A DNA stretch of 64,000 nucleotides from Dimorphilus gyrociliatus (GCA_904063045.1 CAJFCJ010000005.1:3094165-3158164); one strand, 5' to 3'. Positions 2,228 through 31,411 are shown, numbered from the stretch's first letter. The notes: generated from the letters alone by a model not told the origin. A program made the numbers and translations.

Positions 2228-3149
2228 ATGGAAGTAGATCCTCAAAATAGTTTTATTCTATTAGTTCTAAGCTTTCAAAGTATAAATTCTTGTCCATTTA
2301 CTTGGGAAGAAGAAAATGGACATTGCTACAAATTTCAAACAGCAGTACAAACTTGGGTTGATGCGATTGATACATGTAGAACATTGACACCTAAAGCCAA
2401 TTTATTAATTATAGAAACTGAAGAGGAGAACAGCTTTATCAGTGGGAAATTTAAAAGTTCTTTCGAAGATATATGGATAGGACTCCAACGAACTGATTTT
2501 AGTTCGATTCTATTTTTAAATAATCTTACAATATGATATTTCATTCAATTAAAAACTATTTTTTCAGGCAATGAATTAAAATATGAAAATGGCACTTTAT
2601 TTTCAACGAACTATCACAACTTTGCTACTGGTGAGCCAAACTCTGCAGGTGATAGTTGCATTGCTTTGAGACTTTTCTCAGGATGTTAGTACTTTAATAA
2701 GTTCTTAATTATTTAAGAGAAAAGATATCTTTTTGTTATCTTGTAACATTTTCTTTAATATTAGTTTGGAGAGACACGGCATGTACCGACGTTCTAAATG
2801 TAATATGTGAACTTTCACTACCAACTCCTAAATCAGAAAAAGACCAAATGACACCTTTAATATCATTATGTATGAGTATTCCGTGAATAAAATTACTAAT
2901 TTTCATTCATTTTTCTACTTCTAAGTTACGAGATATCGTCTCTCTGCAAGAAATTCGAAACCTCCTGGAGGATATTTAAGGAAATACCATCTAAGAAGTA
3001 AAATTTCCTGCGCCACCTTATGTACTGAACATTCTTCATGTACATCTTTTACTATAAAAAATGATTCGTTTTGTTTTCATTTTAGTAGTAAATATAGTTT
3101 TAATGTATCTCTTGATCATAGTTATGGAGAAGATTATTATATTAAATAA
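2228..3149 (+). CDS. Secreted C-type lectin (EPN, WRD) with C-terminal PAN/Apple-like module; 4 exons
   Basis: CPFTWEEENGHCY...WVDAIDTC...WIGL. Hand-spliced exons give GEPNSAGDSC...WRDTAC...VICE. The terminal phase-1 exon 2926-3149 encodes RSKISCATLCTEHSSCTSFTIKNDSFC...DYYIK*. The start codon is uncertain. Confidence 0.85.
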
Positions 3150-3600
3150 TCATTAAACAATGATTTCAAATACGTAAATTCTCAACACTAATAAAAAGAA
3201 TATCTTCATTGAAAGTTTTATGTAATTACTTTTTTTAGTCAATTGTTCAGAATATTTGTTTATTTGCCTATCCATATTATAAGAGTATATCTTCTTCGAC
3301 AGGGACAACAAGTGTTACGAAATGTCGATATTATTGGAAGTTTCATTATATCTTATTTACTATGCCTCTATCTAGCGAACAATTGAATTTAGAGAAAAAA
3401 TAATAGATTAATTGACAATAGCCCTAAAAAATAGTCCTAATAATTGGAATGATATATATATATATATATTATTCACCAATATCTCACTGTTTAGGTCGTT
3501 ACTATAAATTTATACCATATTCTAATAGGTTGATAGGTTTCAAAAAGGACAGAGTATTGGAATTTTATTCCATTAGAGTAATATATCAGAGAATATATTC

Positions 3601-4645
3601 ATGATATTAAATATGATTAAACTTTTCTTCATTCATTTAATATTCATAATAGAGAGTTGTCCAGACAGTACTTGGAATACGCACAATCAGAATTGTTATA
3701 AACTTTTCGAGCAAAGGAAAAATTGGCATTCTTCTCTTCAACATTGTGAACTATTTTCAGCATATTTGGTCCGTGTTCAGAATTCAGCTGAACACGAGTT
3801 TGTCACGGAATTAGTGAAAGGTATTATTACAACATATAATCCAGCATGGATAAGCTCAAATGATATAGAAACAGGTAAGAGAAAAACAAAATAAATGTCA
3901 TAAATTTGCCTACTTCATTTCATATGAATGAAAAGAAAATGTATTCCGATACGATGATGGTAGCCCCATCAGTTTTAGTTCTTGGCATCATGCGGAGCCC
4001 AACGATGGAGAAGGTGGATCTGATTGTGCTGCTCTAATTGTAGAATCATTTGGATGTAAGTTTATTTTCCATGAAAGAACATGATGAATTCTAATATTCA
4101 TATTCATTTAGACTGGAGAGATAGACCTTGCTATGACAATTATTACTTTATATGCGAAAGTGGTCAAAATGTAATTGAAGCACAGCCCACTACTACAATA
4201 GAGCTCAGTACCACTACAACGGAGTCCACCACCACAGCAGAAGAACCCACTACAACAGTAGAACCCACTACAACAGTAAAACCCACTACAACAGTAGAAC
4301 CCACTACAACAATTGAATTCTCAACAACAATTCAACCTACAATTATACCAATCCTTCAGTGTAAGTTTACCCAATGATATATTAAATATACTACATATAA
4401 TGTACACTAACCTGTATCAATGCTTTTCAGTTGAAAATTACTTTCTCTTTGCTCTAAATTCGACACCATCTAAAACTCAAACTGAAAAATATGTAGTTCA
4501 AAGTAAAATTCACTGTGCTTCACTTTGTAAAATCAGTTCAGCTTGTATGTCATTTACAATCACAGCAAATTTAACGTGTAGGCTATTTCCTGGCTATCGA
4601 TTAATAACAGTGTCAAGTATCGATGAGAGCTATTATACGATCTAA
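3601..4645 (+). CDS. Secreted C-type lectin (EPN, WRD) + Thr-rich stalk + C-terminal PAN/Apple-like module; 4 exons
   Basis: CPDSTW...CYKLF...WHSSLQHC...WIS, HAEPNDG...DC, WRDRPC...FICE, then (E/K)PTTTV repeats. The terminal phase-1 exon 4431-4645 encodes QSKIHCASLCKISSACMSF...C...SYYTI*. The start codon is uncertain. Confidence 0.85.
4243..4314 (+). repeat. Coding 18-bp tandem repeat x4, (E/K)PTTTV
   Basis: gaacccactacaacagta units start at 4243, 4261, 4279 and 4297 (last two slightly diverged). Confidence 0.9.
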
Positions 4646-4967
4646 GAGGTGACCATTTGCACTAGGGATTAAATAGAATATATGTGCATATATTCTATAC
4701 ATATTATTGCAATGATATGTTATCAGCTAAAACTTTAAATGTTTCATTTATATATACAATATAAGAAAATTCAACAGTAAAAAATCGTGTTTTTCTGTAA
4801 CAATAATTTATTTATTTTCTGTATTAATGATAACTAACATAAATCTATATATGTAAATTGTTCATTCTCTATTGTTAAAATTTTTCATATATTAATGATA
4901 GTGCAGAAAAGTATATTTAGCTTGACAATAAAATTTTTTAAAATTTCTATTTTCCTACCAAAACCTT

Positions 4968-5039
4968 ACCGGAAGTAGTTTCAAGTGAAACTAGAAGTGT
5001 AACAACCGGTTTAATAGTCACAGAAATAGTGAACCGGTT
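4968..5039. promoter_or_regulatory. Putative proximal promoter of AKAP17A: ETS site and two AACCGGTT palindromes
   Basis: ACCGGAAGT at 4968-4976; AACCGGTT at 5004-5011 and 5032-5039; all within 110 bp of the ATG at 5078. Motif identity is by consensus only. Confidence 0.45.
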
Positions 5040-5077
5040 ACTCACCATTCATTAGACTTATTTATCCTATACAAAAG

Positions 5078-7496: not shown

Positions 7497-7817
7497 TCTT
7501 GAAAACGGCCTTGCAAAAGGGAAAATACAGCAATGATAATTTTCACAATCAGGTCTACTTTTTAGCTAATGAGGTTTTATTATAGAATCAAGCCAAACAA
7601 ACAAAAAACGTGGAACTAACAATATTCGTGTTCATTTTCTATGTTCTGTTAAAAATTGTTAAATATTATTATAATTATTTAGGACAACTCGGAATTTAAA
7701 TAAATTATTTCTAAATTTTTATTTGCTAAAAGGAATATATTGAATCTGTACTAATTTACTATTCTATTCTCCAGGAACGAACAATTACTCTTTCTAAGAG
7801 TATAAGAAATAAATAAT

Positions 7818-10466: not shown

Positions 10467-10571
10467 AGCCCCCAGTGAGGTTTGAACTCACGACCCCTGG
10501 TTAACTCTCGCATACGCTACAGTTGTAATAGTCGTACAAGACCAGTGCTCTAACCACTGAGCTATGGAGGC
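10467..10571 (-). tRNA. tRNA-Thr(UGU) with 32-nt intron (10503-10534)
   Basis: Minus strand reads GCCTCCATAGCTCAGTGGTTAGAGCACTGGTCTTGTA[intron]AACCAGGGGTCGTGAGTTCAAACCTCACTGGGGGCT. All four stems pair, A and B boxes are intact, and the mature length is 73 nt. A T7 Pol III terminator lies about 20 nt downstream (10440-10446). Confidence 0.95.
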
Positions 10572-11270: not shown

Positions 11271-14200
11271 TCACCCGCACAACCTTTGTAAAATATTGTT
11301 GGAGACTTCGTTTACTGAACCATCGTTTAGGTCTTTTAATCTGAAGACGTTGTCTGAATCCGGATTGGTTGCCATATCAGATAATTCTTTTGTATCAACT
11401 CCATTGCCAACTCCAACAGTCATTAGACGGATTCTCTTTGATTTTGCATTTGACGCTTCGCGTATGGTCGATCCTCGGTTAATGTTTGATCTACCATCCG
11501 TAATAACGATGGCTATGTTATCTATTCCTCCTCTATCGCCTGCCGATGGATTATTAAACATTTGGCTATGCATGTACTGAAGTGCGGAAGCGGTATGAGT
11601 TCCTCGTCTTTGTTTCCTTTGGGTAAAGGCTATAGCATTTAAGACTTCTTTTAAGCTGGTATATTTGTTCATGGGAAATAGTTGCTCCCTAACTACTTGA
11701 TTGTCGAAAGTTAACGCTCCAACACGAGTCCTTCCGCTACTAAAGTTCAATCCCATTGTAATTTTACGAACTAGTTTCATTTGCCATTCAAAAGTTTCCT
11801 CCAGTGAACCGGAAGCATCGATTAGGAAGACCACATCAAATTGTCTGGAGCATCTTCTTTCGCATCTTTCACCGCTGTAGGCTCCATTACATAAACAAAA
11901 GAACTGTCCCAGTTCGTCAATACATCTTCCGCCATTTCTACAAGGGCTGCTAGAACATTCGTTCGTTTCGTCGCATGTAGAACCAACAATCGAACTAATC
12001 ATGGAAGGTAATTTCTCATATTTATCAACAGTAAATACGTTTGAGAAATCGGGTGAGCTTGCAATTCCTTTGATCTCCAGCTTATTGGTTCCGTCCCCGA
12101 TTGTAGCAACAGTTATATGAATACCTGAGACTCTATCAGTAATAGCTTCGGGTACAGTTTTTTCTGGGTTTACATTTGATTGGCCATCCGTAATAACTGA
12201 TTGTAGATAGATTTATTAACTAATGAATAAATGAATAATTAACTGTTACATACCAATACAGTGGTTTACAACATTAGGTCTATCTCCACCTCTGCCATTG
12301 AAAACTGAATCTCTGACCATTTTTAGAGCAGCAGCTGTATGAGTCCTGCCGAATAAGAAAGGTATCCTTTTAATAGCGTGAATAATGTCCCCTTTGTCAT
12401 AGTAAGCGTCGAGATTGAAGTGAAGGTGAGAATTGTCGGAAAAGTATAAAACGGCTACTCTGGCTTTTGTACGTGATATTTCAAACTGATCAACTATTTC
12501 TGCGGTAAATTGTTTAACTAATTCCAATCTATGTCTTCGAATGGAACCGGAAACATCTATTATAAAAGCAATATCGGCTTGAGCATCGCAGCGTCTTTCG
12601 CAGTTTTTTCCCGTTGTTCCAGAGTTACATTCGCAAGTATAAGTATTTATACCATCGATACAACGTGCGCCATTTGAACATGGATTACTTGCGCAATTGT
12701 TGATGTCTAATTTTTAAGATAAAAAAAGATGAATATTAATTAACTAGTTAAATAGTTATTCAATTACTAATTGGAAATAATAAAAAAAATTGCTTACTAT
12801 TACAAATGGCATCAATCATTTGCAAAGTATATCTTGGATTGTATAGGTCATCGAAAGTGTTAAGTTGTAATATATTCTTATCGTTTGGATCAGACGCAAT
12901 ACCCTCTAATTCACTAAGACCTTTACTATTGACTTTAAGACCGACCCCGAGCATTGTTATATCTCTGTTATGCAGCTCGACGGCATTCTTCCAAGTTTGA
13001 TCTGGGTTAGCAGACATTCCGTCAGTGATAACAATACCGACTGATCGAACATTTCGTCTAGCCGAATTAAACATGTCTCTCATTTGAACAAGTGCTTGAG
13101 AAGTTTTTGTTGCACCATTCATAAAAGGAAAACTTAGGGCGTTAGCTGCCTCATCAGAGTTCCTATACTTATTGAATGGGAATCTAACGATTGTTTGATC
13201 CGCAAATGTCAATACTCCTACTCGTACATTGTTCTCGAGTGGAAGTCCTCTGACAATGTTTTTAACATAATTTAATACGGCATAATATCTTTTTGGTCCT
13301 ATCGAATCGGATGAGTCAATTGCTATGGATACATCCGCTTGTTCACGGCATCTGTACTCGCATCTTGGTCCAACGAATCCATTGCGACATCTGCAGGTAA
13401 ACTTATTGATATCATCGATACACTCTCCATTGTTGCAGGAATTGTCTTGACACTCAACGACATCTATGTCAATTAATGTTTAACGATATAACATTAATCA
13501 TTTGAAATTCTACGAACCGTTACAAATAGCTCTAGTTAAAGCACCAGCTACGTCAGACAATTGTCTAAATCTTGTCGAATTGAAAACGTTTAATGTGTCT
13601 GGATCTGTTGCTATTTCGGCCATTTCTATTCTATCAACCCAATCTGAACCAGAAACAACAAGAATTGTGATTCCCTTTAGTCTAGCTTTACTGGCTTCGG
13701 ACGTACTTTCAATCATATTGTTTGAATTACCATCTATACGGGTAAGAACGATCTTGAAAAAATGTGATTAAGAACAAAGAAATTCTCCTATGTCTTACCT
13801 CCAATCAATACCATTATATTTCTTACATTTGAACGATCGCCACCAGTACCAAACATTCTCTCTGAAGCTGTTCTAATAGCGCTTGCGACGTTTGTCGTTC
13901 CACCCATATATCTAAGATTATTCAGAGCCGTTTTGATTCGATCGGTTGATGTATATTGATTTAAATTAAAACCAATTTGGGCGGAACCTCCATAAGTAAC
14001 TACGCCAACTCTAGTTTGGCCAGCCTCAATATTCAATTTACGTATAATATTGTTTACGAACGTCTTTTGGTGGTTAAAGTTTGTATGACCAACCGAACCT
14101 TTAATAGAAAATAGCCTGCCAATAAATTGAAAGAAAAAACTTAAACTACAAACCCGATGAATCCATAAGAAATACAACGTCTGAACCTTGCCGACAATCG

Positions 14201-14921
14201 CTAACGGCTGTACATGCTGTATCTACCACTAATTTACGAATAGAATCCAAAGTATCGAAGTCGGCGTTAAAGACAAACTTTTCCGAAGGCTTATTGGCAA
14301 TACCCTCTAATTCTGATTTACTAGTTTTCTCACCAATACCAATAGCTAGGATAATAATATTTTTATCTCTAGCCTTATTGGCTTCTGGTACAGTTTGATC
14401 TTTGTCGAAGGTAGATTCACCGTCCGTTATAACAACGGCTATGTTAGGAGCGTTAGGACGATCACCATTAGCAGTGGTAAACATCTGTTCATGCATAACA
14501 CGAATACCACCAGAAGTATTTGTATTCTGATCAAGATATTTAATGCCTAAAATAGCATTTCCTAGCAATTTCTTGTCAGAATATTCGTTAAGATGAAAGA
14601 CCGGCTTGGCTTTATTACCATAAACGACAACACCAACTCTAGTAAAAGTTGGTCCTATTCTAAAGTTATCAGTAACATTTTTAGTAAAACTTAATAGTCT
14701 TAACCAATTTGGTGGCTTGATTGATCCAGAGGAATCTAGTACGAATACTATGTCGACTAAATCGCAAGTTTCGTCTAAAAAATGAATGATAAGATATGAA
14801 TAAATGTCAAAATCATTTCAATTAATAATTAAATAAAAGTATCAGAATATATTTTACCTTCAAGAATTTGACTTGTTGAAAAAACAACGAACGAAAATAA
14901 AACTATTAAAAGGAGTTTCAT
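11271..14921 (-). CDS. Secreted multi-VWA/EGF protein: SP-VWA-VWA-EGF-VWA-EGF-VWA-EGF-VWA (matrilin/collagen VI-like VWA domains, no collagen helix)
   Basis: Signal peptide MKLLLIVLFSFVVFSTSQ. Five VWA domains, each with a DxSxS motif (DSSGS, DSSGS, DSSDS, DVSGS, DASGS). Three EGF repeats (e.g. NECSSSPCRNGGRCIDELGQFFCLC). Seven short GT-AG introns join the ORF-track pieces. Confidence 0.9.
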
Positions 14922-15892: not shown

Positions 15893-18229
15893 TCAATCTA
15901 AATTATCAATTGGAATGGGAGTTACATCAATTTTTTCGGCGCCTTTGCAGAAACGGAAAACTTGCCCTTCCTTAATCACTTCTAGACATTCATAATTACC
16001 GTTACAACGGTAAAACTATTTTGAAGAAAAAATTCCAATTATTATTCATTTTATATTGTATGTTTTCTTTCACTACTTACCTCGCATGGCTGTGTTGGAT
16101 TGCATTCGCAGGTGGGACATCCTCGTTCATCAAATTGTCTACCTGCAAGTCCACAGTCATTATGACATTCTGGACATTCATTGGAAAGACAATAAGGTTT
16201 TGGTAATGTACAACCAGCAACAACACATGAAGGTTCAACAACACACCTTTTACCGTTAGGACATACAATATCCTCACAAGTAGGCAGTTCATCATTACAT
16301 TGGCATGTTTCACATCCCGTTAAAGGATTCTTTTTGAAACCATTCTCACAAAATTTATTGCAACCTCGTTGAAAGCATACACATTTAGTTTTCCAAGGTT
16401 TACAATCAGTTGAATGTGATTTACAATCTACTTTCTCAACAATACACTCTTGTCCTATTGAACACGTTGTATTATCACATAAATTGTTGGGTGCGCAGTC
16501 ACAAGTTAAACAACCAGTTTTACTAACAATTCGTTTTTGATTTTGTGGGCATTCCTTCGAACAAGCAATAATTCCACATAATTGGCAAAAAATATCATTT
16601 CCTAGGACTGTACATTCGCTATCAAAGGGGCATTTAAGCTGATCGCACGAATATGGTATATTACATTCACAAGTTGGGCATCCATTACCATCTTTCTTCT
16701 GTCCCCATGAGCATAAAAATGGAAGTGTCGTACAGTTAAGGTCAGGGCAATACTTTTCACAGGTAGCTATCATTAAAGGACATGGAACTCCTGGATCGCA
16801 TTCAGGGGTTGTAACCTGGCAAAATTCGTCAAGTGCGCATTTAATCTGTCCACAATCGTCCGGGGGAGTACAAATATCTGTTTGACATCCATCCGGTGTA
16901 TTTAAGCAACCATATGGGCAATGCTCAGGACATTCAACAGCTATACAGTTTGGTATACAAGTAATGTATGGCTTTTCGCAATCTTCATCACAACCTTCAG
17001 AGTTAGGAACACAATCTGGAGACATGCCTTCGGAACATTCACATTTTGGACAGTCTGGTTTGACTAATTTACAGACTGAACCTGTCGGGCACGATACATT
17101 AGAGCAACTTTGCATTGGTACACATTTCCTGCAAACTGATCGAGAACAGTCGTCAGTAGAGTTGATACATTCAAAACCAATACCGCAATCCCTAATTTCG
17201 CAGGTTTCCAGAACGCATTTCGGAAGTTTTTTCATACATGGAAAAGTAGTGCATTCAGCGTCTCTCATTTCACATATAAATCCGTCAGGACAGTGAACAA
17301 CATCGCACGAAGCTGGAATACATTCTGCATGTTTGTGCCGTTCATTAAAGAGATGATTATTATGCTCATTATGCTCTGCGCATACATATTTATCTTTACA
17401 AGTTATTTCGTTACATGTAGGTAGATAACAGTTACAACTTTTACATTTATTAGACATTCTCCTATGACCATGTGTACAACTGAGGCCACAACTCAGTGGA
17501 TTAAAGCAAGAATTTGGTACACATATAAACTTTTGTTCACAAATTTCTTGAGGTGGACATTGAAGTCCAACAATTTCGCAATGTTCATCTTCTTTGCATT
17601 GAATATCCTTACAAGACTGTTTCAAATTTTTAGAACACCTAATACATTCGTCAGCAAATGAACATTTGTCAGGTGAACTAAAACATTGAGTGCAAATGAA
17701 CTCGCAAAAAAAGTTCATTAAGAATAAAGGCATACATCTTGCCTCCTGTCTGCACTCATCCATACGATTTGAGTTTACTGAAATGGTATTGTTTGCTTCG
17801 ATCTCAGGTGAGCTGTTACACATGTTAACTTCAAAGCATTTATCATAAGTTGGATGGCATTGAACATCACTACATTTTTCTTTTGCTGTCGTTATACAGC
17901 TGGAACAGTCAGGGCAACCTAAAAAAGAAATATTGCATAATGAAATCCTAATTAAAATGAAAAATAACTTTTATTCAGTTTTCTTTAGTAAAGAAAGTTC
18001 CTCTTTTAAAGAAACTTTTTATCATACCATCATCGCTATAAGTTAAGAAACCCTTTTCACAGATACAAGGTAGGCACGTTACGCATTCACATGTTGGACA
18101 TCCCTGCTCATCAAATATTTCCTTTACACCAAAATAACACTCAGCGACATCACACGGAGGACATACTAGACTGCAAGTTAACTTGAAAATTCCACACGTA
18201 AATATTAAAAATCCTATAAATGATCTCAT
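15893..18229 (-). CDS. Secreted Cys-rich protein A with antistasin-like and follistatin-N-like repeats; 3 exons
   Basis: Signal peptide MRSFIGFLIFTCGIFKLTCS; repeats of the type C-x3-C-xx-G...GCPTCEC. Introns at 17919-18027 and 16016-16080. The last exon ends FRFCKGAEKIDVTPIPIDNLD*. Confidence 0.88.
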
Positions 18230-18962: not shown

Positions 18963-21408
18963 TTAAATCGGAGTTGGAATCACATCAATTTTTTTGGCGC
19001 CTTTGCAGAAACGGAATAGTTTTCCTTTCTTCAGCATTTGCCGACATTCATACTCGTCGGGGCATTGGAAACCCTATTTCAAAGAAAATTTCTATTATTA
19101 ATCAATTTACTTTACGAAATTCATTCATTTCTTACCTCGCAAACCTCTGTTGGATTACATTTGCAAGTAGGACAGCCACTTGCATCTTGTTCGTGACCTT
19201 CAGGTCCACAATTGATGTCGCAAAATAGTTCGCCACAATCTGGTATACACTTGCAAGTTTTACAGCCATTATCATCAATATCTCTCCTAAATCCTAAATT
19301 ACACTGTGGACACAATTCCAATTTTGGACAGATCACACAGACTGGTTTTGGTAGTGGGCATCCGCTACCCGTACATGTGGGTGAAACAACACATGTTTTA
19401 CCTGTGGGACATTTAATATCTTCACAAGTAGGGAGATCATCGTTACATTCACATGTGTCACATCCTGTTAGAGGATTCTTTTTGAAGCCATTCTCACAAA
19501 ATTTATGGCAATCTTGCTGTATGCAGACACACTTGGTTTTCCAAGATTGGCAATTAGTATCATTTTGCTTACAGTCCAATTTCTGAACAATGCACTCTTT
19601 TCCTATCGAACAGGTCACATCTTCACATACGTCGCTTGGTGTACAATCACAGACTGTACAACCGAAATGATCAACCATACGCTCTTGACCTTGTGGGCAT
19701 TCTTTTGGACATTCCACTATTCCACATGATTGGCATGAAATTTCATCATTCTTAGCCCTACACATATTATCGGCATGGCATTTGATCTGATCGCATGAAT
19801 CTGGTTTATTACACTCACAAGTTGGACAGCCGTTGCTATCTAACTTCATTCCCCATGGGCAAATGTCATGAGATTTAGTACAGCTGAGATCAGGACAATA
19901 CTTTACGCATGTAGCAATCATTGAAGCACACGGACCTTCTGAATCGCAATCAGGGGTTGTAACTTGGCAAATTTCTCCAGTTTTGCATTCGAGCGAATCA
20001 CAATCACTGGGTGGAGCGCAAATTGTTGTTAAACATCCGCCAACGGTTTTTAAGCAACCAAATTTGCAATTAGCAGGACATTCTACTTCTTTGCAGTTAG
20101 GGGCACAAGTAGCATATGGTTTTTCGCAATCTTTGTCACAACCTTCAGAGTTGGGAACACAGTCTGGAGACATACCTTCGGAACAGGTACACTCGGGGCA
20201 TTCAGGCTTTATTATTTTACAAACTGTTCCAGGTTTGCAAGTCATCTTAGAGCAGTCTTTGTGTGGCACGCATTTTGGACAAACTGATAGAGAGCAACCT
20301 TCAGTGGAATGAATGCAGTCAAACTCATTACCGCAGTCAATATTATCACAAGTTTCAAGAACGCATTTTGGAAGTGCTTCTGTGCAAGGTGGTGAAACGC
20401 ATTTAATATCTTCTTGCTTACAAATGAAGCCTGAAGCACATTGAACATTCTCGCATGTAGCAGGAATGCATTTAGCTTCTTGATAACAATCTGCGTCGGT
20501 TTCACCCAAGCAAACCTCTTTTTCGACACATAGATAATCATCTTTGCAGGTAATATCTTTACAAGATGGAATTTTGCATTCGCACTGAGGACACTTGTTT
20601 TCCAATCTTTTTAAGCCGTGCTTACATTCTAGAGGACAATACATCGGATAAGAGCAATTATTTGGAACACAAACGGCTTTTGCTTTGCATAATTCATTAG
20701 CAGGACAAGTTAGCTTTTCTAATTCACAGTGCTCGTTTTCCTTGCAGTTAGCTTGAGAACATAATGATAAATGTGATTTTTTGCATGTTTTTTCGCATTC
20801 GGCGGCAAATGGTTGGTTGGGCTTGGTGAATAGAGGACAGATATGAGAACACCAAAATTCAGTCAATATTTTTGGTGTGCATCTGGCTTCGGTGACGCAT
20901 TCAGCATCCGTATTACACCTTTGTATCTCATTGCAGAAAAAGTGTTCTTTATAGCATTCAACTTCAGTGCATGATCCTGCAGGCTTTTTGAGGCAGCTTG
21001 AACAATCGGGACATCCTAATGTAAAAGTAAAAAATTGAGGAATTTAGCAGAGGAATAAGGGATTTTTAAAGAAATAAAATAGAATAGCAAACACTAGGAA
21101 TAGGGGAATGCATAGAGGGCGTAACTGTAAACAGTTCAAATCAAGGGGCCCGTTCTTTACTTAATTTGTTTTTCAAGTGACAAGTAGAAATATAAAGTAC
21201 CTTCTGTATCATAGTCTGTAAAACCGAACAAACATTCGCTTGAGCAGTCTTCACACGTTAAACATGCGCAAGTCGGGCAGCCGTCTTCACCAATTGTCTC
21301 ACTTAAGCCATAAGGACATGAATCAAGGTCACAGGCTGGGCATTCTAGACTGGCGGCTAAATGCGCCAGTCCACAGCAGAAGAGCAAAAATCCAATGACA
21401 GATTTCAT
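18963..21408 (-). CDS. Secreted Cys-rich protein B, tandem paralog of A; 3 coding exons
   Basis: Signal peptide MKSVIGFLLFCCGLAHLAAS. Colinear with A, with shared blocks such as CSEGMSPDCVPNSEGCD and KFCENGFKKNPLTGC. Introns at the same positions (21016-21200, 19074-19135). Ends FRFCKGAKKIDVIPTPI*. Confidence 0.88.
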
Positions 21409-23545
21409 TACCTATAATGAAAATATTAGATAACTATAAAACAAAAATTATCAAAGGGAAAACATACTTGATTTTGTTCACTACAACTTTCTCTTGCTGT
21501 GAAACCTATGAGAAATTGGACCAAGAATATTCAAGAAATTTCTTTTTTCCCTTTCAAACAGGTTCAAAGCAGAAGTAAGAAGTCAAGTTGAAGTTTGCCT
21601 GGAGGTATTAGACGAGAGAATGACACCTGAAATCGCTGTTTGACAGTTGTAGCTGAGTATCTACTCAATTAAAAGTCGATGCTAATTGGCTAATCACTGG
21701 AGAAAATACAGAAAAACATGCAAGACAGACATGTAGTTCGAGAAAATGGACAATTAACATAAAGTTAAGCGAACAGAGCGTTAAATTGATAGAATTACCT
21801 AAATATTAATAAATTAACGCTAAATATGTTAATAAACAAAATACTCTATTATTAATATGTAATACACTTCATTATTGCAGCTAGAAAGAGAAGTAATAGG
21901 AATCGTTCGAAAGAATAGAACAAAAATAAGATACTAAAGTATAATATATTAATAACAGAATTTGGTCATTAACTCCGTCCACTATTTCTACAATAAGAGA
22001 AAAAGACACAATATTGTAATAATTCGAAGAAAAAGGATGGTTAAATCTCTTCTATTTACAAATATTTTATAAGATAACACTAAGATGTTTTATTGATTTT
22101 ATACCATTTATTTAAATATTTATATCAAGGTGTTTATATATTTATTAATATTATATATAGAACCATTTTTTACGTAATATACTAGATATTTTATAAGAAA
22201 AGGTTAAGTACTACTATTTATAACCATAGAAAGTTCCCTAAGGTCACTAATCTCTTGTTCTCATTTCTTATCCAAACTTGAAATAACAATTTGCTCTTAA
22301 CAACGTCGTTGTACAAATTTTACCGAGATTCGTTATATTTTCCATATCATAATATAATTTGGCTAGTAGATAAACTATATCACGCCCTGTTAACTAATAG
22401 CTTTTTAGGTTAAGTGGGATGGAAATATTCTAATGTTTAGTTAAATAAATCAAATAGGTGAGACAAACTTCGAAACAAAGAAGATAGAATTTAGTCTAAC
22501 TATAAAAGAGTTATACCAAGCTTCTGACATTTTTGGAATATTTCAAATAGTTGCCTGACTATATATATCATTTATAAACTACAAAAAAACATTACATTAT
22601 TCACAATATGCTTAAATGTTCTAGCCCTGTAAATGCTCTGATTAACATTTCAAATCTGCAACACGCTTAATTTTTCCAGGACGCATAACTTATAACTGAT
22701 GACATCATTCTAACTAGTACAGTGTTATACAAACTATGGGTGAATTGCCGGAAATCTATGTTGTCTATTGAACAAAAAGAAAAAAAGTTTAATGGAACAG
22801 TTTGCGATTGTCTTCCTCTGTATTGCAATTCCATTTTTATTGATTTATTCATAATATATCTATAAATATATAGCTCTTTGTATAGATTTTATTTATATGT
22901 ACAAACAGTGTACATATTTAGGTAACCTACTATGGTAGATTTATTATCTTTTCTTGCTCAGAACAAATGATAAATCGTTACAATCAAACAGCTTGATAAA
23001 AAGAGATATTTATTATATATTATACAATAAATCATTCTAACAATAGAAATGATATATAAAAGAAATTATTTAGAGAGGTCTCAAAGTAAAAAATAGGTCA
23101 TAGTTGATTCACCTCTTAACTAATTTACAAATGAATAATTTATGTACTAGGATAACAAAGTTAATGTCGTCACAGGAACAAATATTTAAAATTCTGAGAC
23201 AATACAAAGAATATTTTTTCATAACAGATAGAAATATTACAAAATATTAGATCTAAAAATATACAAAGCAATATGATTCAAAAACCCGGAAAAAGTCTAT
23301 TAATATCAAAAGAAAAAAACATTGAATTTTACATGTGTACAGGTATAATTTAATATAAAATCTATTAAGTATGCTCTTACCGAATGAAAAAAGAAAAATA
23401 GTTCTCTAATTGATTATCTCTTATTTCATCGTTTAAGTATATAAGCCCGAAGAAATCCATAAAGCCATAATAACATCCCATGTTAATCATTTCATTCTCT
23501 AAGGATCACCGGCTAAACATAGGCAGCTCTACCTAGCTGAAAAAA

Positions 23546-26500
23546 ATGATACAATTAATAATATTTCTCATATATACTGTTAAAATGAAAACATATTTTA
23601 ATACATTTGGCTTAGCAAAAATTATTACTCTTACTATTATTTTTAACCAAGAACGATACTTTGTTTTCTCAGCACCATCCACTATTCCTACAACTTTTAC
23701 CTTCTCCACAGTTATGACACCGGCAGCTTCAAGTACCACTCCTACGACACAAACGGTGAATCCAACAGTATCTTCTGGTCCATCCACTGGCAATCCTTCA
23801 ACAGTGATAACACCAGGTGCATCAAGCACAGCTCCTGCGACACAAACGGTGAATCCAACAGTATCTTCTGGTCCATCCACTGGCAATCCTTCAACAGTGA
23901 TAACACCAGGTGCATCAAGCACAGCTCCAGCGACACAAACAGTCAATCCAACAGGTTCTACTGGTCAATCCACTGGCAATCCTTCAACAGTGATAACACC
24001 AGGTGCATCAAGCACAGCTCCTGCGACACAAACAGTCAATCCAACAGGTTCTACTGGTCCATCCACTGGCAATCCTTCAACAGTGATAACACCAGGTGCA
24101 TCAAGTACCGCTCCTGCGACACAAACAGTCCATCCAACAGTATCTTCTGGTCCATCCACTGGCAATCCTTCAACAGTGATAACACCAGGTGCATCAAGCA
24201 CAGCTCCAGCGACACAAACAGTCAATCCAACAGGTTCTACTGGTCAATCCACTGGCAATCCTTCAACAGTGATAACACCAGGAGCATCAAGTACCGCTCC
24301 TGCGACACAAACAGTCAATCCAACAGGTTCTACTGGTCAATCCACTGGCAATCCTTCAACAGTGATAACACCAGGTGCATCAAGCACAGCTCCAGCGACA
24401 CAAACGGTGAATCCAACATTATCTTCTGGTCCATCCACTGGCAATCCTTCAACAGTGATAACACCAGGTGCATCAAGCACAGCTCCAGCGACACAAACGG
24501 TGAATCCAACATTATCTTCTGGTCCATCCACTGGCAATCCTTCAACAGTGATAACACCAGGTGCATCAAGCACAGCTCCAGCGACACAAACAGTCAATCC
24601 AACAGGTTCTACTGGTCAATCCACTGGCAATCCTTCAACAGTGATAACACCAGGAGCATCAAGTACCGCTCCTGCGACACAAACAGTCAATCCAACAGGT
24701 TCTACTGGTCAATCCACTGGCAATCCTTCAACAGTGATAACACCAGGTGCATCAAGCACAGCTCCAGCGACACAAACGGTGAATCCAACATTATCTTCTG
24801 GTCCATCCACTGGCAATCCTTCAACAGTGATAACACCAGGTGCATCAAGCACAGCTCCTGCGACACAAACGGTGAATCCAACATTATCTTCTGGTCCATC
24901 CACTGGCAATCCTTCAACAGTGATAACACCAGGTGCATCAAGTACCGCTCCTGCGACACAAACAGTCCATCCAACAGTATCTTCTGGTCCATCCACTGGC
25001 AATCCTTCAACAGTGATAACACCAGGTGCATCAAGCACAGCTCCAGCGACACAAACAGTCAATCCAACAGGTTCTACTGGTCAATCCACTGGCAATCCTT
25101 CAACAGTGATAACACCAGGAGCATCAAGTACCGCTCCTGCGACACAAACAGTCAATCCAACAGGTTCTACTGGTCAATCCACTGGCAATCCTTCAATAGT
25201 GATAACACCAGGTGCATCAAGCACAGCTCCTGCGACACAAACAGTCAATCCAACAAGTTCTACTGGTCAATCCACTGGCAATCCTTCAATAGTGATAACA
25301 CCAGGTGCATCAAGCACAGCTCCTGCGACACAAACAGTCAATCCAACAAGTTCTACTGGTCAATCCACTGGCAATCCTTCAACAGTGATAACGCCAGGTG
25401 CATCAAGCACAGCTCCAGCGACACAAACGGTGAATCCAACATTATCTTCTGGTCCATCCACTGGCAATCCTTCAACAGTGATAACACCAGGTGCATCAAG
25501 TACCGCTCCTGCGACACAAACAGTCCATCCAACAGTATCTTCTGGTCCATCCACTGGCAATCCTTCAACAGTGATAACACCAGGTGCATCAAGCACAGCT
25601 CCAGCGACACAAACAGTCAATCCAACAGGTTCTACTGGTCAATCCACTGGCAATCCTTCAACAGTGATAACACCAGGAGCATCAAGTACCGCTCCTGCGA
25701 CACAAACAGTCAATCCAACAGGTTCTACTGGTCAATCCACTGGCAATCCTTCAACAGTGATAACACCAGGTGCATCAAGCACAGCTCCTGCCACACAAAC
25801 AGTCAATCCAACAGGTTCTACTGGTCCATCCACTGGCAATCCTTCAACAGTGATAACACCAGGTGCATCAAGCACAGCTCCTGCGACACAAACAGTCAAT
25901 CCAACAGGTTCTACTGGTCCATCCACTGGCAATCCTTCAACAGTGATAACACCAGGTGCATCAAGTACCGCTCCTGCGACACAAACAGTCCATCCAACAG
26001 TATCTTCTGGTCCATCCACTGGCAATCCTTCAACAGTGATAACACCAGGTGCATCAAGCACAGCTCCAGCGACACAAACAGTCAATCCAACAGGTTCTAC
26101 TGGTCAATCCACTGGCAATCCTTCAACAGTGATAACACCAGGAGCATCAAGTACCGCTCCTGCGACACAAACAGTCAATCCAACAGGTTCTACTGGTCAA
26201 TCCACTGGCAATCCTTCAATAGTGATAACACCAGGTGCATCAAGCACAGCTCCTGCGACACAAACAGTCAATCCAACAAGTTCTACTGGTCAATCCACTG
26301 GCAATCCTTCAACAGTGATAACACCAGGTGCATCAAGCACAGCTCCAGCGACACAAACGGTGAATCCAACAGTATCTTCTGGTCCATCCACTGGCAATCC
26401 TTCAACAGTGATAACGCCAGGTGCATCAAGCACAGCTCCAGCGACACAAACAGTCAATCCAACAGTATCTTCTGGTCCATCCACTGGCAATCCTTCAACA

Positions 26501-27955
26501 GTGATAACACCAGGTGCATCAAGCACAGCTCCTGCGACACAAACAGTCAATCCAACAGGTTCTACTGGTCAATCCACTGGCAATCCTTCAACAGTGATAA
26601 CACTAGGAGCATCAAGCACAGCTCCTGCGACACAAACAGTCAATCCAACAGGTTCTACTGGTCAATCCACTGGCAATCCTTCAACAGTGATAACGCCAGG
26701 TGCATCAAGCACAGCTCCTGCGACACAAACAGTCCATCCAACAGTATCTTCTGGTCCATCCACTGGCAATCCTTCAACAGTGATAACACCAGGTGCATCA
26801 AGCACAGCTCCAGCGACACAAACGGTGAATCCAACAGTATCTTCTGGTCCATCCACTGGCAATCCTTCAACAGTGATAACACCAGGTGCATCAAGCACAG
26901 CTCCTGCGACACAAACAGTCAATCCAACAGGTTCTACTGGTCAATCCACTGGCAATCCTTCAATAGTGATAACACCAGGTGCATCAAGCACAGCTCCTGC
27001 GACACAAACAGTCAATCCAACAAGTTCTACTGGTCAATCCACTGGCAATCCTTCAACAGTGATAACGCCAGGTGCATCAAGCACAGCTCCAGCGACACAA
27101 ACGGTGAATCCAACAGTATCTTCTGGTCCATCCACTGGTAATCCTTCAACAGTGATAACACCAGGAGCATCAAGTACTGCTCCTGCGACACAAACAGTCA
27201 ATCCAACAGGTTCTACTGGTCAATCCACTGGCAATCCTTCAACAGTGATAACGCCAGGTGCATCAAGCACAGCTCCTGCGACACAAACGTTGAATCCAAC
27301 AGTATCTTCTGGTCCATCCACTGGCAATCCTTCAACAGTGATAACACCAGGTGCATCAAGCACAGCTCCAGCGACACAAACAGTCAATCCAACAGTATCT
27401 TCTGGTCCATCCACTGGCAATCCTTCAACAGTGATAACACCAGGTGCATCAAGTACCGCTCCTGCGACACAAACAGTCAATCCAACAGGTTCTACTGGTC
27501 AATCCACTAGCAATCCTTCAACAGTGATAACACCAGGAGCATCAAGTACCGCTCCTGCGACACAAACGGTGAATCCAACAGGTTCTGCTGGTTCATCAAC
27601 TTTTTATCCAACAACAATAGTGACACCTAGTGCATCAAGCACTGCTTCTGTTACACAAACTGTAAATCCAAGTAACAGTCCAATATCTTTGCTTGTTACG
27701 CCTGGACCCACAGAAATTTTGAATGCCTTACCGACAATTTATATTTTACGGGAAAGATCTGTGAAATCTGTAACTAATGTGTTAATTACTATTTATAGCC
27801 AAAGTAAAATTCATTGTGCGGTTACCTGTAAAATGCTTGACCAATGTAAATCTTTTAATTTTAAAGTTGATGCTTATTGTGATTTGTATAGTTTAAACAA
27901 GTTAACGAATTATACTTCTGTTGGTGTTAAGAATTTATTTTATTCATCGTTGTAG
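23546..27955 (+). CDS. Mucin-like protein: hydrophobic N-terminus, 41 x 31-aa Thr/Ser/Pro repeats, C-terminal PAN/Apple-like module
   Basis: Uninterrupted 1469-aa ORF dominated by T/S/P/G/A. C-terminus QSKIHCAVTCKMLDQCKSFNFKVDAYCDLY. The true start is uncertain: ATG at 23546 or 23585, or an upstream exon spliced to the acceptor-like ttttctcag near 23672. Confidence 0.88.
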   Translation: MIQLIIFLIYTVKMKTYFNTFGLAKIITLTIIFNQERYFVFSAPSTIPTTFTFSTVMTPAASSTTPTTQTVNPTVSSGPSTGNPSTVITPGASSTAPATQTVNPTVSSGPSTGNPSTVITPGASSTAPATQTVNPTGSTGQSTGNPSTVITPGASSTAPATQTVNPTGSTGPSTGNPSTVITPGASSTAPATQTVHPTVSSGPSTGNPSTVITPGASSTAPATQTVNPTGSTGQSTGNPSTVITPGASSTAPATQTVNPTGSTGQSTGNPSTVITPGASSTAPATQTVNPTLSSGPSTGNPSTVITPGASSTAPATQTVNPTLSSGPSTGNPSTVITPGASSTAPATQTVNPTGSTGQSTGNPSTVITPGASSTAPATQTVNPTGSTGQSTGNPSTVITPGASSTAPATQTVNPTLSSGPSTGNPSTVITPGASSTAPATQTVNPTLSSGPSTGNPSTVITPGASSTAPATQTVHPTVSSGPSTGNPSTVITPGASSTAPATQTVNPTGSTGQSTGNPSTVITPGASSTAPATQTVNPTGSTGQSTGNPSIVITPGASSTAPATQTVNPTSSTGQSTGNPSIVITPGASSTAPATQTVNPTSSTGQSTGNPSTVITPGASSTAPATQTVNPTLSSGPSTGNPSTVITPGASSTAPATQTVHPTVSSGPSTGNPSTVITPGASSTAPATQTVNPTGSTGQSTGNPSTVITPGASSTAPATQTVNPTGSTGQSTGNPSTVITPGASSTAPATQTVNPTGSTGPSTGNPSTVITPGASSTAPATQTVNPTGSTGPSTGNPSTVITPGASSTAPATQTVHPTVSSGPSTGNPSTVITPGASSTAPATQTVNPTGSTGQSTGNPSTVITPGASSTAPATQTVNPTGSTGQSTGNPSIVITPGASSTAPATQTVNPTSSTGQSTGNPSTVITPGASSTAPATQTVNPTVSSGPSTGNPSTVITPGASSTAPATQTVNPTVSSGPSTGNPSTVITPGASSTAPATQTVNPTGSTGQSTGNPSTVITLGASSTAPATQTVNPTGSTGQSTGNPSTVITPGASSTAPATQTVHPTVSSGPSTGNPSTVITPGASSTAPATQTVNPTVSSGPSTGNPSTVITPGASSTAPATQTVNPTGSTGQSTGNPSIVITPGASSTAPATQTVNPTSSTGQSTGNPSTVITPGASSTAPATQTVNPTVSSGPSTGNPSTVITPGASSTAPATQTVNPTGSTGQSTGNPSTVITPGASSTAPATQTLNPTVSSGPSTGNPSTVITPGASSTAPATQTVNPTVSSGPSTGNPSTVITPGASSTAPATQTVNPTGSTGQSTSNPSTVITPGASSTAPATQTVNPTGSAGSSTFYPTTIVTPSASSTASVTQTVNPSNSPISLLVTPGPTEILNALPTIYILRERSVKSVTNVLITIYSQSKIHCAVTCKMLDQCKSFNFKVDAYCDLYSLNKLTNYTSVGVKNLFYSSL
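23750..27660 (+). repeat. 93-bp coding minisatellite, 41 full units plus degenerate flanks
   Basis: Unit TVNPT(GSTGQ|GSTGP|VSSGP|LSSGP|SSTGQ)STGNPSTVITPGASSTAPATQ. Equivalent positions 23762 and 27575 are exactly 41 x 93 nt apart. Confidence 0.95.
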
Positions 27956-30288
27956 ATTTTGAGAGTATTTTATAATTTTATGAACCATGTTTTTATTGAA
28001 GTGTTTGTCTAATAAATTTTGTTTTGAGGTATATCCTGAATTATCAAATATAGAAGATTTTCTGTTAAGAATAGTGACCTTGAATTGTTATCTTGCTGAA
28101 GATTTTTGCTGTTTTTTGCTAATTATATCAAGCAGACACTAATTTTATGAAAGGGCCTTTATAAATTGTTGATAATTGTAAGAATAATTGGCGATCATTA
28201 ATTGTAGAACTTATTAGATTACTATAATTACATTTCTAAAAAAGTAATATTTATGTTGAGTAATAAGTATAGCTTTTCTTCTGCATAATGTTAATAATAT
28301 GATCTTTTATTCTCTTAACAATGTATTACTTAATAAAGAATTGGTGAATTGTCATTATATTCAAATTTTCTAATTTGTTATAGATTTATTACAGAAATAT
28401 ATATTTAAATGAGTAATGGCAAAAGACTAAAAGTCGGCTAGTTGAGGTAAATAAGACAATCTATATAAATATTTGTGGAAAACTTCAAATTTTTTTGTCA
28501 ATTAGTTACTAATTAACTTTAGTAACGGTTGTAGTCTGTACGAAAATTTCTTATTGCTCAGTAAATTGTGTATTAGTGAGATATACTGACTGCATCATAT
28601 AAAAGTGACAAAGTGATATTTAGTATATATGCAGTATCTATACAGTTTATACTGTTTTTTTAGTGTATAGCTTCTTTCCTGTCCCGCTATTTCTTTGAAA
28701 AATCAATCTTTAGTAAAACTTGAAAGTGCAATAATTGATTTTATTATACAGTTAATACATTTTATATAAGAAAAAATTATAGCTTATTTAACTATCTTTT
28801 CACTTTTTATTCCTTTTGAAAAAATCTTCGATAAATATCAGTTTTTTCGACTATTTTTAAACTTTTAATATCAATAGGACAACGAAATATACTTTATGTA
28901 TAAAAGCTAAGCTTTTTGGAATATTTATAGAATATACGAAGTTGTTTTATACTGTTTATATAGCAATTGCATCTCCTTTAATGTTTGCATTATATATAAA
29001 GCTAAGATGTTAATATTGGAAATCTTTAGGCTAGAATATGAAAATATACACTATATATACAGTATATTGTATTTTTGTATATATGTATATATACTATAAC
29101 TAACAACTTTATGTATTTAATACATTACATACTTATGTTTAAAAAAAAACACTTGTTTATTTTCTATAAAAACGAAATAGAAATGTATTGAATGTCATTA
29201 AAATCAATATGACAAATTTACATAATACAAGTATTATTCATATTTTTTAAAGGCGTACTTCTATCTTTATTTCCGTAACAAATATCAAATTGAACAGTAC
29301 TTGTAATTTAAAAGAAAAACCATAAAGTTATGAATAATGTTTCTGTTGAATAAAATCAAAAATTCGAATAAACTTTTATAAAGTTTCCAATTCTATCTTC
29401 CAATCGTTAATATTGACTATTTAAATTCAGTAAAATCGTAATTGTTACTAAGCGACAAATGGATATCTATATTAAGATTAGTAGATTATCTTTTTTCCTT
29501 TAATTTGACTGAAGTAGTAATAATGTCGAATATTAAATTTTCAAAGAATTGAACTTTCTAATAATATTTGTAGATTAGAAATTACTGTTTTCACTAACTG
29601 CGTTAAGTGTAAATAGAATGTTTGCAAGATAACTGCTATATTCTACTAAAGATAAATAGTTTGTCCTCTTATTATGACATATCAATTTATAAAGTTAGAT
29701 CAAATGGAAAGTCTATGAAACTGAGAACCTTTCACATTATAAGCGTTATCCTATTAAACATGAATTATGCAGTAAATTGAGAAGTATTTCTATAGCTCTA
29801 ATTGACTTTTAATTGTGTGAAAAATAAAGTATATCCGGTTTGTATTTTTGACATCATTTTTCCATCTGCGTCTCTTCAGAGCAATTGACTGCAAAAGTGT
29901 GAAGAGTATGAAAAGTGTTGATAGTTGAAAAGTGTCAATAGCGTCCAATTAAATCAACTTTTACAAACAAAATGGCAAATAGTAATCAAAAAACAAAAGG
30001 GTACACATTATAGTTATGTTTATATTTGCCATTAAATAGAAGACAACACCTAAAAATCAATCACTAGCACAAAAATATCAATGTAGTAATCATATAGTAT
30101 CGAAGTTTATAAGAAAACATAGCTTAATTACAGAAAGACGATATAGAAGCCGCTAATATATAAAAAAATTATAATAAGCCAATGAAGAAGTGAAGTATGC
30201 ACACTCTATCGGAGGAGAAAAGAGTTTAATCATTGTCCTCTTCTGCTGCTTGGAACTATCACTTCATCTTACAAATTAACCTACTACA

Positions 30289-31411
30289 ATGAAATTATTA
30301 ACTTCTCTATTAGGATTCGTATCTTTCAGTCGTATTATGACAAACTGTCCAGACTCCAGCTGGAAAACTTATAATTCACATTGCTACTACATATCTTCAA
30401 CAAAAGAAAACTACAATGATGCTATAAACGAGTGTATTGGTATGTCGTCTCACATAGTACGAATAGACGATAGCTCTGAAAATAATTTTTTATGGGGTGT
30501 CGTCGATAATGGTGGTTTTGGAATAATACACACAAGTCCAAATGCAATTTGGTTAAGTGTAAATGATAGGACAAGTGGTATAGTATACAAGTTTTTTTTT
30601 TAATAACATAAACAAAGTGTGTTGACTTCTTCATGATTCAAACATCAAGAGGGTCACTTTAAACACGAAGATGATTCTAATGCTGCGTACCTGAACTTTG
30701 TGGGTGGGGATCCAAATGATTGGTAAGCGTTATTGTTCTATGGAAAGAATTTTGAATTCTCTTTTTATTTAATCTTATCTTTCTTTGTAGGGATGGAACT
30801 GATGGTGCAGACTGTACCGCTATGACGTTACTTGATACTGGAGGTTAAATAAAAATATATTATTGTTTTTAAAGTCTGAGATATTCTTGACTATCATAGG
30901 TTGGAGGGACAGAAAATGCTCAGCAAAATATCATTACGTTTGCGAAAGAAACTTTATTCCAACTACAACTCCCCAAACAACTCTTGAAACAACGGCCCAG
31001 ACAACTATTCAAACAACAATCCAGACAACTATTCAAACAACAACTGTTATACCTTCAACAGCAGCTACAACTGAAGGCCCAACAACCACTATTCAACCGG
31101 ATTTATCATCATCTATTAAAGGTTTTTTTCAACTTTTATCAGATTGTTCTGATTATCTAACTTGTTATTCTATTAATCTATCCTACCTAGTAACGCAGTA
31201 CTTTCTTCATGCTAAAGCTGCAAAACCGCAAACAAATTTTGTTACGCAACTAAAATCTCGTGGTAGAATTCATTGCGGTATACTATGTAGCTCTTTGGAA
31301 GCTTTATGCCAATCATTTACGTTGAAGGATGATTTGACATGTTTCCTGTACGGAGAAATGCGACTATCTTTATTAAATGTTAACTTGAACGAAGATTACT
31401 ACACAATTTAA
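30289..31411 (+). CDS. Secreted C-type lectin (DPN, WRD) + Thr-rich stalk + C-terminal PAN/Apple-like module; 5 exons
   Basis: Signal peptide MKLLTSLLGFVSFSRIMT; CPDSSW...CYY...C...WLS; GGDPNDW|DG...DC; GWRDRKC...YVCE; (QTTI)n stalk. The terminal phase-1 exon 31191-31411 encodes RGRIHCGILC...CQSF...C...DYYTI*. Confidence 0.87.

Follow-up and report, generated by a model that had tools for sequence, protein, structure and literature searches.

Why should a giant mucin and three genes with C-type lectin-like domains (CTLDs) end in the same protein module, and what would such a common tail do? The question is raised by a stretch of 64,000 nucleotides of the Dimorphilus gyrociliatus genome (GCA_904063045.1 CAJFCJ010000005.1:3094165-3158164), referred to below as the window. 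A preliminary description of this DNA had placed one terminal module behind all four proteins and suggested that it polymerises or anchors them. The genes add an annelid example to a little-studied class of secreted proteins combining a C-type lectin-like head with a PAN/Apple module. If the PAN tail is a matrix-docking module, the four of them would also offer a compact genetic handle on the assembly of invertebrate mucus and surface coats.

Structure of the four genes

The three lectin gene models (g1, g2 and g4, Table 1) contain GT-AG introns of 56-80 bp, their coding lengths are divisible by three and their frames are closed; the published median intron of D. gyrociliatus is 66 bp (PMC7854359). 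As the preliminary description had it, the module of each lectin forms a terminal exon of its own, which follows an AG and begins in phase 1. Intron positions and phases are common to g1, g2 and g4, with one additional phase-2 intron in the CTLD of g4, and the three heads are mutually best matches in the genome, the next head following at 4.5e-9. The three CTLD genes are thus whole-gene duplicates. Between head and module the spacers differ widely in length, and the figure of about 45 residues given earlier for a stalk had to be replaced by 19, 67 and 58 residues for g1, g2 and g4, and about 1340 for the mucin. The Thr-rich stalks of the lectin genes are predicted to be of the O-glycosylation type.

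Table 1 Position and composition of the genes, modules and repeats in the window, counted from its first nucleotide.
Feature	Position	Strand	Length	Exons	Composition
g1	2228..3149	+	239 aa	2228-2501, 2568-2684, 2765-2869, 2926-3149	Signal-like N-terminus, CTLD (EPN ... WRD), linker of 19 aa, PAN as terminal exon
g1 PAN module	2928-3146	+			
g2	3601..4645	+	285 aa	3601-3874, 3936-4055, 4112-4360, 4431-4645	CTLD (EPN ... WRD), Thr-rich stalk of 67 aa, PAN as terminal exon
g2 stalk repeats	4229-4311				18-bp repeats
g2 PAN module	4433-4642	+			
Mucin ORF	23546..27955	+	1469 aa	Single exon	Hydrophobic N-terminus
Mucin repeat array	23739-27671				Ser/Thr/Pro repeats, 42.3 copies of 93 bp (31 aa), 93% matches
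Mucin PAN module	27737-27952	+			
g4	30289..31411	+	285 aa	30289-30577, 30650-30722, 30791-30843, 30900-31121, 31191-31411	CTLD (DPN ... WRD), Thr-rich stalk of 58 aa, PAN as terminal exon
g4 stalk repeats	30965-31044				24-bp repeats
g4 PAN module	31193-31408	+			

In the mucin the module lies in the repeat ORF itself, with no intron between them, so the earlier statement that it is fused to the repeat exon was borne out. Thr, Ser and Pro make up 57% of the protein, which has the long Pro/Thr/Ser tandem-repeat domain of secreted mucins. The VWD assemblies and C-terminal cystine knot of gel-forming mucins are missing from it, and a Pfam scan of its last 90 residues gave no domain other than PAN. 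The whole ORF contains four cysteines (residues 1424, 1428, 1434 and 1445), all within PAN. The possibility that a lectin exon precedes the mucin was considered and rejected, none being visible in 21000-23545. Five genes unrelated to the family lie between the g1/g2 pair and the mucin, so that the locus does not form a tightly knit functional cluster.

Looking up exact matches in protein collections yielded nothing for the mucin ORF, taken from either of two start codons, nor for three further ORFs, and a word search of such collections with a 182-aa open frame running through the last intron of g4 gave no match; a profile of the module found no match below 1e-15 among 1.84 billion representative proteins. 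As none of the four predicted proteins was found in these collections, neither public annotation nor proteins derived from transcripts could serve to corroborate the splicing.

The lectin-like heads

Single exons of g1, g2 and g4 were searched with the Pfam profile Lectin_C (PF00059, cut-off 22.6 bits), and exon 1 scored 29.3 bits in g1, 28.8 in g2 and 21.8 in g4. Each head has six cysteines distributed over its exons in the long-form framework, together with a WIGL-type motif (WIGL, WISS or WLSV). Score, framework and motif place the heads in the Lectin_C family, g4 with a score just below the cut-off. At Ca2+ site 2 we found EPN in g1 and g2, DPN in g4, and WRD in place of WND in all three; none of them combines EPN or QPD with WND as Ca2+-dependent sugar-binding C-type lectins do. 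Since Arg takes the place of the WND Asn and g4 carries DPN, canonical sugar binding is doubtful and lectin activity is not assured.

Identity of the terminal module

When the four modules were aligned, ten residues proved invariant (Y, L, I, C, C, C, S, F, C and Y), confirming that one module closes all four proteins. Conservation extends beyond the cysteines to a Y-x-L strand, a K-I-H-C motif, an S-F pair and a YY tail. The modules are pairwise 28-43% identical, with BLASTP E-values between 1e-8 and 8e-4, calculated for a nominal database of 1e7. All of them follow the pattern C-x3-C-x5/6-C-x10-C; a spacing of x4-5 had been given for the whole set, and g4 has x6.

The PAN/Apple identity that the preliminary description expected is supported by Pfam PAN_1 (PF00024, cut-off 21.4 bits), which scored at or near its cut-off in three of the four modules: 23.7 bits in g1, 21.2 in the mucin (E 2.6e-4) and 20.5 in g2 (E 4.3e-4). 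The g4 module had no Pfam match. PAN_3 was found on g2 alone (E 0.007), and PAN_1 fits better. Among the 67 best library matches of a four-module profile, 60 were PAN_1 proteins. Modelled with AF2, the g1 and g4 modules (pLDDT 85.7 and 89.7) both have the element order E-E-H-E-E-E and the antiparallel sheet on one helix that is typical of the PAN fold. The PDB matches listed by Foldseek for these two models were almost all of PAN/Apple type (TM 0.6-0.8, probability about 1.0, E about 0.02), and included the HGF N domain, SML-2, plasminogen PAp, FXI A4, TgMIC4 and LAPP; the g4 model reached TM 0.80 with plasminogen PAp and 0.77 with TgMIC4 apple-5. Foldseek E-values as weak as these are usual for domains of 70 residues. 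The aromatic tail, earlier treated as a separate appendage, belongs to the domain: the PAN_1 alignment runs through it to profile position 72 of 76, and in each of the two models it makes up the final strand.

From profile matches and predicted folds we conclude that the shared module of about 70 residues is a minimal PAN/Apple domain with four cysteines. These invariant cysteines would form two core disulfides, the helix pair being joined to the strand pair. The third, outer disulfide of the six-cysteine Apple subfamily (factor XI and prekallikrein) has no counterpart here, as no cysteine flanks the four of each module; three bivalve relatives (P0040, P0059 and P0061) do have extra terminal cysteines.

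Relationships within the genome

A genome-wide HMM of the module had been proposed earlier. Built from the four modules and run against the whole genome, it found only those four at E < 1e-30, and the next match at 1e-4. With the mucin module alone as the query, the best non-self matches were g4 (1.2e-5), g2 (3e-3), a locus on C11 (0.013) and g1 (0.036). In a tree of PAN modules the lectin modules group together at 83/85 and g2 with g4 at 95/91; nothing but this trio is resolved, the branch of the mucin module being long, and we accordingly claim no order of events. Common descent of the PAN module in the four genes is supported by its sequence, and the separate phase-1 exon in the three lectin genes is consistent with exon shuffling.

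PAN is abundant elsewhere in this 78-Mb genome, with more than 150 PAN exons (487 PAN_1 candidates at first look; of the 150-odd that were scored, 152 matched). The module occurs in long arrays as well as beside CTLD, F5/8C with fibrinogen_C, TSP1-like and Trefoil/VWD domains; alternating CTLD and PAN are fused to Trefoil and VWD, domains of mucus type, at C9:2059500-2064500 and C7:11500-16000. Short genes of a head-stalk-PAN type, with PAN tails related to the modules of the window, lie on C1, on C11 and, in two copies, on C7. To the eye the heads of these genes resemble CTLDs, but single exons gave no better than E 0.0065 and 0.078, and the heads were not counted as proven CTLDs; nor are they among the closest genome matches of the window heads. 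The family thus appears to be a product of ordinary domain shuffling among secreted proteins, and it offers a clear-cut example of lectin genes and a mucin having a phase-1 PAN exon in common.

Comparison with known systems

The preliminary description knew of no named system with this layout, yet the class IV CTLD proteins of Caenorhabditis elegans, encoded by 16 genes, consist of one or two CTLDs with one or two CW/PAN-3 domains, and the combination of CTLD with PAN/CW is described as previously found in nematodes (PMC5297725). They too are small secreted proteins that join a CTLD to a member of the PAN superfamily, an architectural match at the level of the superfamily. Class IV proteins carry PAN_3, whereas the window modules fit PAN_1 best. 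Given the low identity, orthology is unlikely.

The three-part layout itself recurs in a brittle star, an echinoderm. Two uncharacterised Amphiura filiformis paralogues, XP_072042037.1 (P0047, 290 aa) and P0071 (315 aa), consist of a Lectin_C head, a Thr/Pro-rich stalk and, at the extreme C-terminus, a four-cysteine PAN_1 module with an aromatic end, a layout identical to that of the window lectins. Over 45 aa their PAN shares 44% identity with the mucin module, but their heads can barely be aligned with those of the window (E 0.03), so that convergence and ancient homology are not distinguishable. Word searches from the brittle-star PAN region or a mixed alignment, a method too insensitive for the purpose, turned up nothing beyond that protein, a paralogue and two short fragments from metagenomes. 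A lectin-like head with PAN is not new: it had been found in nematodes already and occurs in other phyla too. What we present is a well-supported annotation and not a new kind of system.

Three further systems share part of the layout. The PAN domains of C. elegans LET-653 bind the luminal matrix dynamically and help to anchor and position the protein (PMC4970718). LET-653, a secreted apical-matrix protein built as PAN-PAN, mucin-like linker and ZP, has PAN and an O-glycosylated mucin-like stretch in common with the window proteins; however, its PAN domains are N-terminal and its functional core is ZP, whereas the window proteins have PAN at the C-terminus, no ZP and, in the lectins, CTLD heads. 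With gel-forming mucins of the MUC2/MUC5 type the window mucin shares the long Ser/Thr/Pro tandem-repeat domain, but it has neither VWD, CysD nor cystine knot, nor any cysteine outside PAN, and therefore lacks the machinery for covalent oligomerisation. The fold of the modules is also that of apple/PAN lectins and adhesins in which PAN domains have documented binding to sugar, heparin or collagen: FHL, a mannose-specific flathead lectin of skin mucus made of apple domains (PMC3219417), Sarcocystis SML-2, Toxoplasma MIC4, the leech anti-platelet protein and the HGF N domain. These have six-cysteine or tandem PAN and no CTLD, in contrast to the single four-cysteine PAN of the window proteins, and the binding residues are too poorly conserved for their specificity to be transferred.

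Possible role of the common tail

We consider it rather probable that the four genes are a locally duplicated family of secreted glycoproteins in which PAN is a non-covalent matrix-binding site. The module would have spread by duplication and phase-1 exon shuffling in a genome where PAN is among the most widely reused extracellular modules. As a second, non-covalent site it would bind a protein or glycan belonging to the matrix of surface coat, mucus, cuticle or cocoon, so that one matrix partner would hold both the lectin-like heads and the brush of the mucin. The role of the proteins would then be that of bivalent linkers or components of the coat, and not that of disulfide polymers. The analogy with LET-653 makes it plausible that they may dock non-covalently to one partner in the matrix.

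Polymerisation by the shared tag, as put forward earlier, would join lectin heads and mucin into multimers or networks through PAN-PAN self-association, and we regard it as very improbable. The apple-4 domain of factor XI, which mediates dimerisation of that protein, is among the fold matches; nevertheless, no free cysteine is available for covalent linkage, the mucin having four, all in PAN, and each lectin six in the CTLD and four in PAN, which leaves no odd cysteine over. With one PAN per protein self-association would yield dimers and not polymers, and VWD and cystine-knot domains are absent. A role in mucosal immunity would make the lectins soluble pattern-recognition agglutinins with glycans of microbes or food as ligands of both CTLD and PAN. 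The stalk would serve only as a spacer, and the mucin would be an unrelated carrier or decoy with the PAN lectin domain in common by chance. In keeping with this, EPN is retained in g1 and g2, PAN/Apple domains can be lectins (FHL and, among the fold matches, galactose-bound SML-2), and lophotrochozoans have expanded CTL families with expression in mucosal tissues (PMC10140915). We hold such a role to be unlikely, given the WRD of all three CTLDs and the DPN of g4, and because it leaves the tail of identical type on a 1300-aa mucin brush unexplained.

It is also conceivable, if quite doubtful, that the tail has no shared function at all, PAN being no more than a promiscuous module which local duplication and the shuffling of exons left at the four C-termini, and the proteins having neither a partner nor a matrix in common. 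The number of PAN exons beside many different heads, the unrelated genes that separate the members and the modest identity of the modules are in line with such an origin. Against it stand the conservation of residues other than cysteines and the C-terminal position of this PAN subtype in bivalve and brittle-star proteins too, which suggests a conserved role of the terminal PAN. The most far-reaching form of the matrix-binding reading would make PAN an address tag that docks the 1300-residue mucin brush and the three lectin-like heads, with their stalks of graded length, to one surface-coat partner, giving a layered, length-sorted glycocalyx whose logic would recur in the CTLD-stalk-PAN proteins of brittle stars and molluscs; we rate this extension as improbable.

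Shared C-terminal module

The C-termini of three C-type-lectin-like (CTLD) genes, g1, g2 and g4, and of the single-exon mucin align across about 72 residues, with an invariant Tyr, Leu and Ile, three Cys, a Ser-Phe pair, a fourth Cys and a tail Tyr, at a pairwise identity of 28-43% (BLASTP E 1e-8 to 8e-4). In the Pfam search, with a PAN_1 cut-off of 21.4 bits, the g1 module scored above it (23.7 bits), the mucin and g2 modules slightly below (21.2 and 20.5 bits), and the g4 module gave no PAN_1 match. A profile of the four modules retrieved 67 proteins at E <= 1e-3 from 1.84 billion representatives, 60 of which carry PAN_1. The modules of g1 and of g4, the one without a Pfam match, were modelled using AlphaFold2 with a 16-17-row alignment (pLDDT 85.7 and 89.7, respectively), and the order of the strands and the helix was identical in both models. 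When compared with the PDB by Foldseek, these models matched almost exclusively PAN/Apple-type domains: HGF N domain, plasminogen PAp, Sarcocystis SML-2, Eimeria MIC5, the factor XI and prekallikrein apples, TgMIC4, and leech anti-platelet protein. The TM-scores were 0.6-0.8 and the probabilities about 1.0; the E-values, about 0.02, are weak, as expected for a domain of 70 residues. The preliminary description was thus right in seeing one C-terminal module in all four genes and in assigning it to PAN. It is a minimal PAN with four Cys, i.e. two predicted core disulfides; the outer disulfide found in true Apple domains is missing. The "aromatic tail", previously listed as a separate feature, is instead the last strand of the PAN fold.

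Gene models, heads and stalks

The window, located at C5:3094165-3158164 in an assembly of 77.9 Mb, is AT-rich (about 30% G+C) and clearly animal DNA. Splice sites of g1, g2 and g4 were predicted from the sequence by reading and then script-checked, and protein searches for these spliced genes were performed exon by exon. Introns of the gene models (56-80 bp) agree with the published D. gyrociliatus median of 66 bp in a 73.8 Mb genome (PMC7854359). The first exon is 274 bp in both g1 and g2, the phases are also identical, and g4 follows the same plan with one additional phase-2 intron. As noticed before, the intron preceding the last exon is of phase 1 in all three lectin genes, and in the mucin the module shares an open frame with the repeats. 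The last intron of g4 (31122-31190) has a length of 69 bp, which keeps the frame, and contains no stop codon, with an ORF running uninterrupted across it (30863-31411), so its retention would insert 23 aa in frame rather than truncate the protein.

Positions of the genes and loci (window positions unless a contig, C, of the same assembly is named; L, locus elsewhere in the genome)
Feature	Position	Strand	Length	Description
g1	exons 2228-2501, 2568-2684, 2765-2869, 2926-3149		239 aa	GT-AG introns, coding length divisible by three
g2	exons 3601-3874, 3936-4055, 4112-4360, 4431-4645		285 aa	GT-AG introns, coding length divisible by three
g4	exons 30289-30577, 30650-30722, 30791-30843, 30900-31121, 31191-31411		285 aa	GT-AG introns, coding length divisible by three
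Mucin	23546-27955		1469 aa	one open frame
ECM gene	11271-14568	-		multi-exon; EGF domain and at least 4 VWA domains; matrilin/collagen-VI-like
Antistasin-repeat proteins, two paralogues	16051-17823, 19121-20866	-	590 and 581 aa	single ORFs, Cys-rich
L020	C7:2973500-2977500			paralogous mosaic: F5/8 type C, CTLD, PAN, F5/8 type C, fibrinogen_C
L021	C123:17800-21500			paralogous mosaic, domain order as L020
L022	C43:146500-150000			paralogous mosaic, domain order as L020
L023	C9:2059500-2064500	-		large gene: alternating CTLD/PAN, then EGF-like and VWD; Trefoil also present
L024	C7:11500-16000	-		large gene: alternating CTLD/PAN, then EGF-like and VWD
L030	C17:165626-168823	-		small secreted gene, reverse order: N-terminal PAN_1, then strong Lectin_C (E 3e-12)

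The first exons of g1, g2 and g4 scored 29.3, 28.8 and 21.8 bits with Lectin_C (Pfam cut-off 22.6 bits), and each head is a long-form CTLD with a hydrophobic N-terminus, a putative signal peptide as judged by eye. The Ca2+/sugar motifs are EPN in g1 and g2 and DPN in g4, followed in all three by WRD in place of WND, which makes canonical sugar binding doubtful; the term "lectin" is used here in the sense of "lectin-like". The stalks of 19 (g1), 67 (g2) and 58 aa (g4) contain about 53% T+S+P in the two longer ones. The mucin repeat region of about 1340 aa (57% T+S+P) is built from a 93-bp unit in 42.3 copies with 93% matches; no lectin exon was seen upstream of the mucin frame, within 21000-23545. 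The 1.84-billion-representative library and the exact-match collection contained none of the four proteins and no relative with more than about 50% identity, and the four may be absent or mis-modelled in public annotation. The Antistasin-repeat pair is placed between the g1/g2 pair and the mucin, with an upstream signal-peptide-like exon near 21230-21410.

Family relationships

Across the whole genome, the four-module profile gave E < 1e-30 for these four copies only, the next match being at 1e-4. The fairest family test is the mucin module alone, being the most divergent member; its best non-self matches were g4 (1.2e-5), g2 (3e-3), a locus on C11 (0.013) and g1 (0.036). The heads of g1, g2 and g4 are mutual best genome matches, followed by a generic CTLD at 4.5e-9, and in the module tree their tails group at 83/85 support, with g2 and g4 together at 95/91; hence, g1, g2 and g4 arose by duplication of whole genes. 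The mucin tail, on a long branch without a resolved position, is shared with them by a more distant relationship.

Docking or polymerisation

The PAN module had been proposed to polymerise or anchor the lectin heads. The mucin has exactly four Cys, every one within PAN, each lectin has six in the head and four in PAN, and no spare Cys, VWD or cystine-knot domain is found in the four proteins; covalent polymerisation of the gel-forming-mucin type is therefore excluded on sequence grounds. With a single PAN per chain, dimers at most could be formed. No hydrophobic C-terminal stretch is present in the four proteins, so the sequence suggests no membrane or GPI anchor. Non-covalent docking via PAN is plausible and better supported than polymerisation, by analogy with LET-653, whose PAN domains bind dynamically to a luminal matrix and help to keep the protein in place (PMC4970718), with a mannose-specific lectin of fish skin mucus made of Apple domains (PMC3219417), and with several of the fold matches, which bind galactose, heparin or collagen. 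The earlier system-level interpretation goes beyond the evidence.

Precedents and genomic distribution

The lectin-PAN layout, for which the preliminary description knew of no named system, has precedent and is not new in this family: among the CTLD proteins of C. elegans, class IV (16 genes) combines CTLD with PAN/CW (PMC5297725), and Amphiura filiformis XP_072042037.1 (290 aa; a 315-aa paralogue exists) contains Lectin_C followed by a Thr/Pro stalk and ends in a PAN_1 with four Cys, as in the window lectins. Its PAN domain shares 44% identity over 45 aa with the mucin module, but the CTLD heads barely align, so the common architecture may reflect either ancient homology or convergence. Bivalve proteins (Mactra, Mya) carry the same PAN subtype C-terminally on a different head of no assigned domain, and a spider protein has PAN first, then a Thr-rich repeat. 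Leads from the ESM Atlas cluster listing are mollusc clusters with PAN_1 and Lectin_C (73, 142 and 326 members, about 230-250 aa) and a cnidarian Lectin_C-EGF-PAN_1 cluster.

Within this genome both families are large, with at least 152 exons matching PAN_1 (152 of 487 first-look candidates) and at least 138 matching Lectin_C, and the two domains are combined repeatedly. L023 and L024 have a mucus-type domain set, which makes them candidates for the actual gel-forming partner that small CTLD-PAN proteins would have. Related PAN tails behind Thr-rich stretches, with weakly CTLD-like heads, occur on C11, C7 (two copies) and C1. The C7 copies of this head-Thr stalk-PAN gene (C7:4504151-4504363 and C7:4513005-4513217 (-)) have identical scores and lie 8.9 kb apart, which indicates that the gene was duplicated in tandem very recently. 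Few extracellular modules of the genome are as amplified as PAN; the PAN_1 scan also gave matches at C5:880-899 kb, on the contig of the window. Dense PAN_1 exon/domain arrays were observed at C20:801000-846000, C16:575000-590000 and C42:44000-52000, the last with a period of about 305 bp and near-identical scores.
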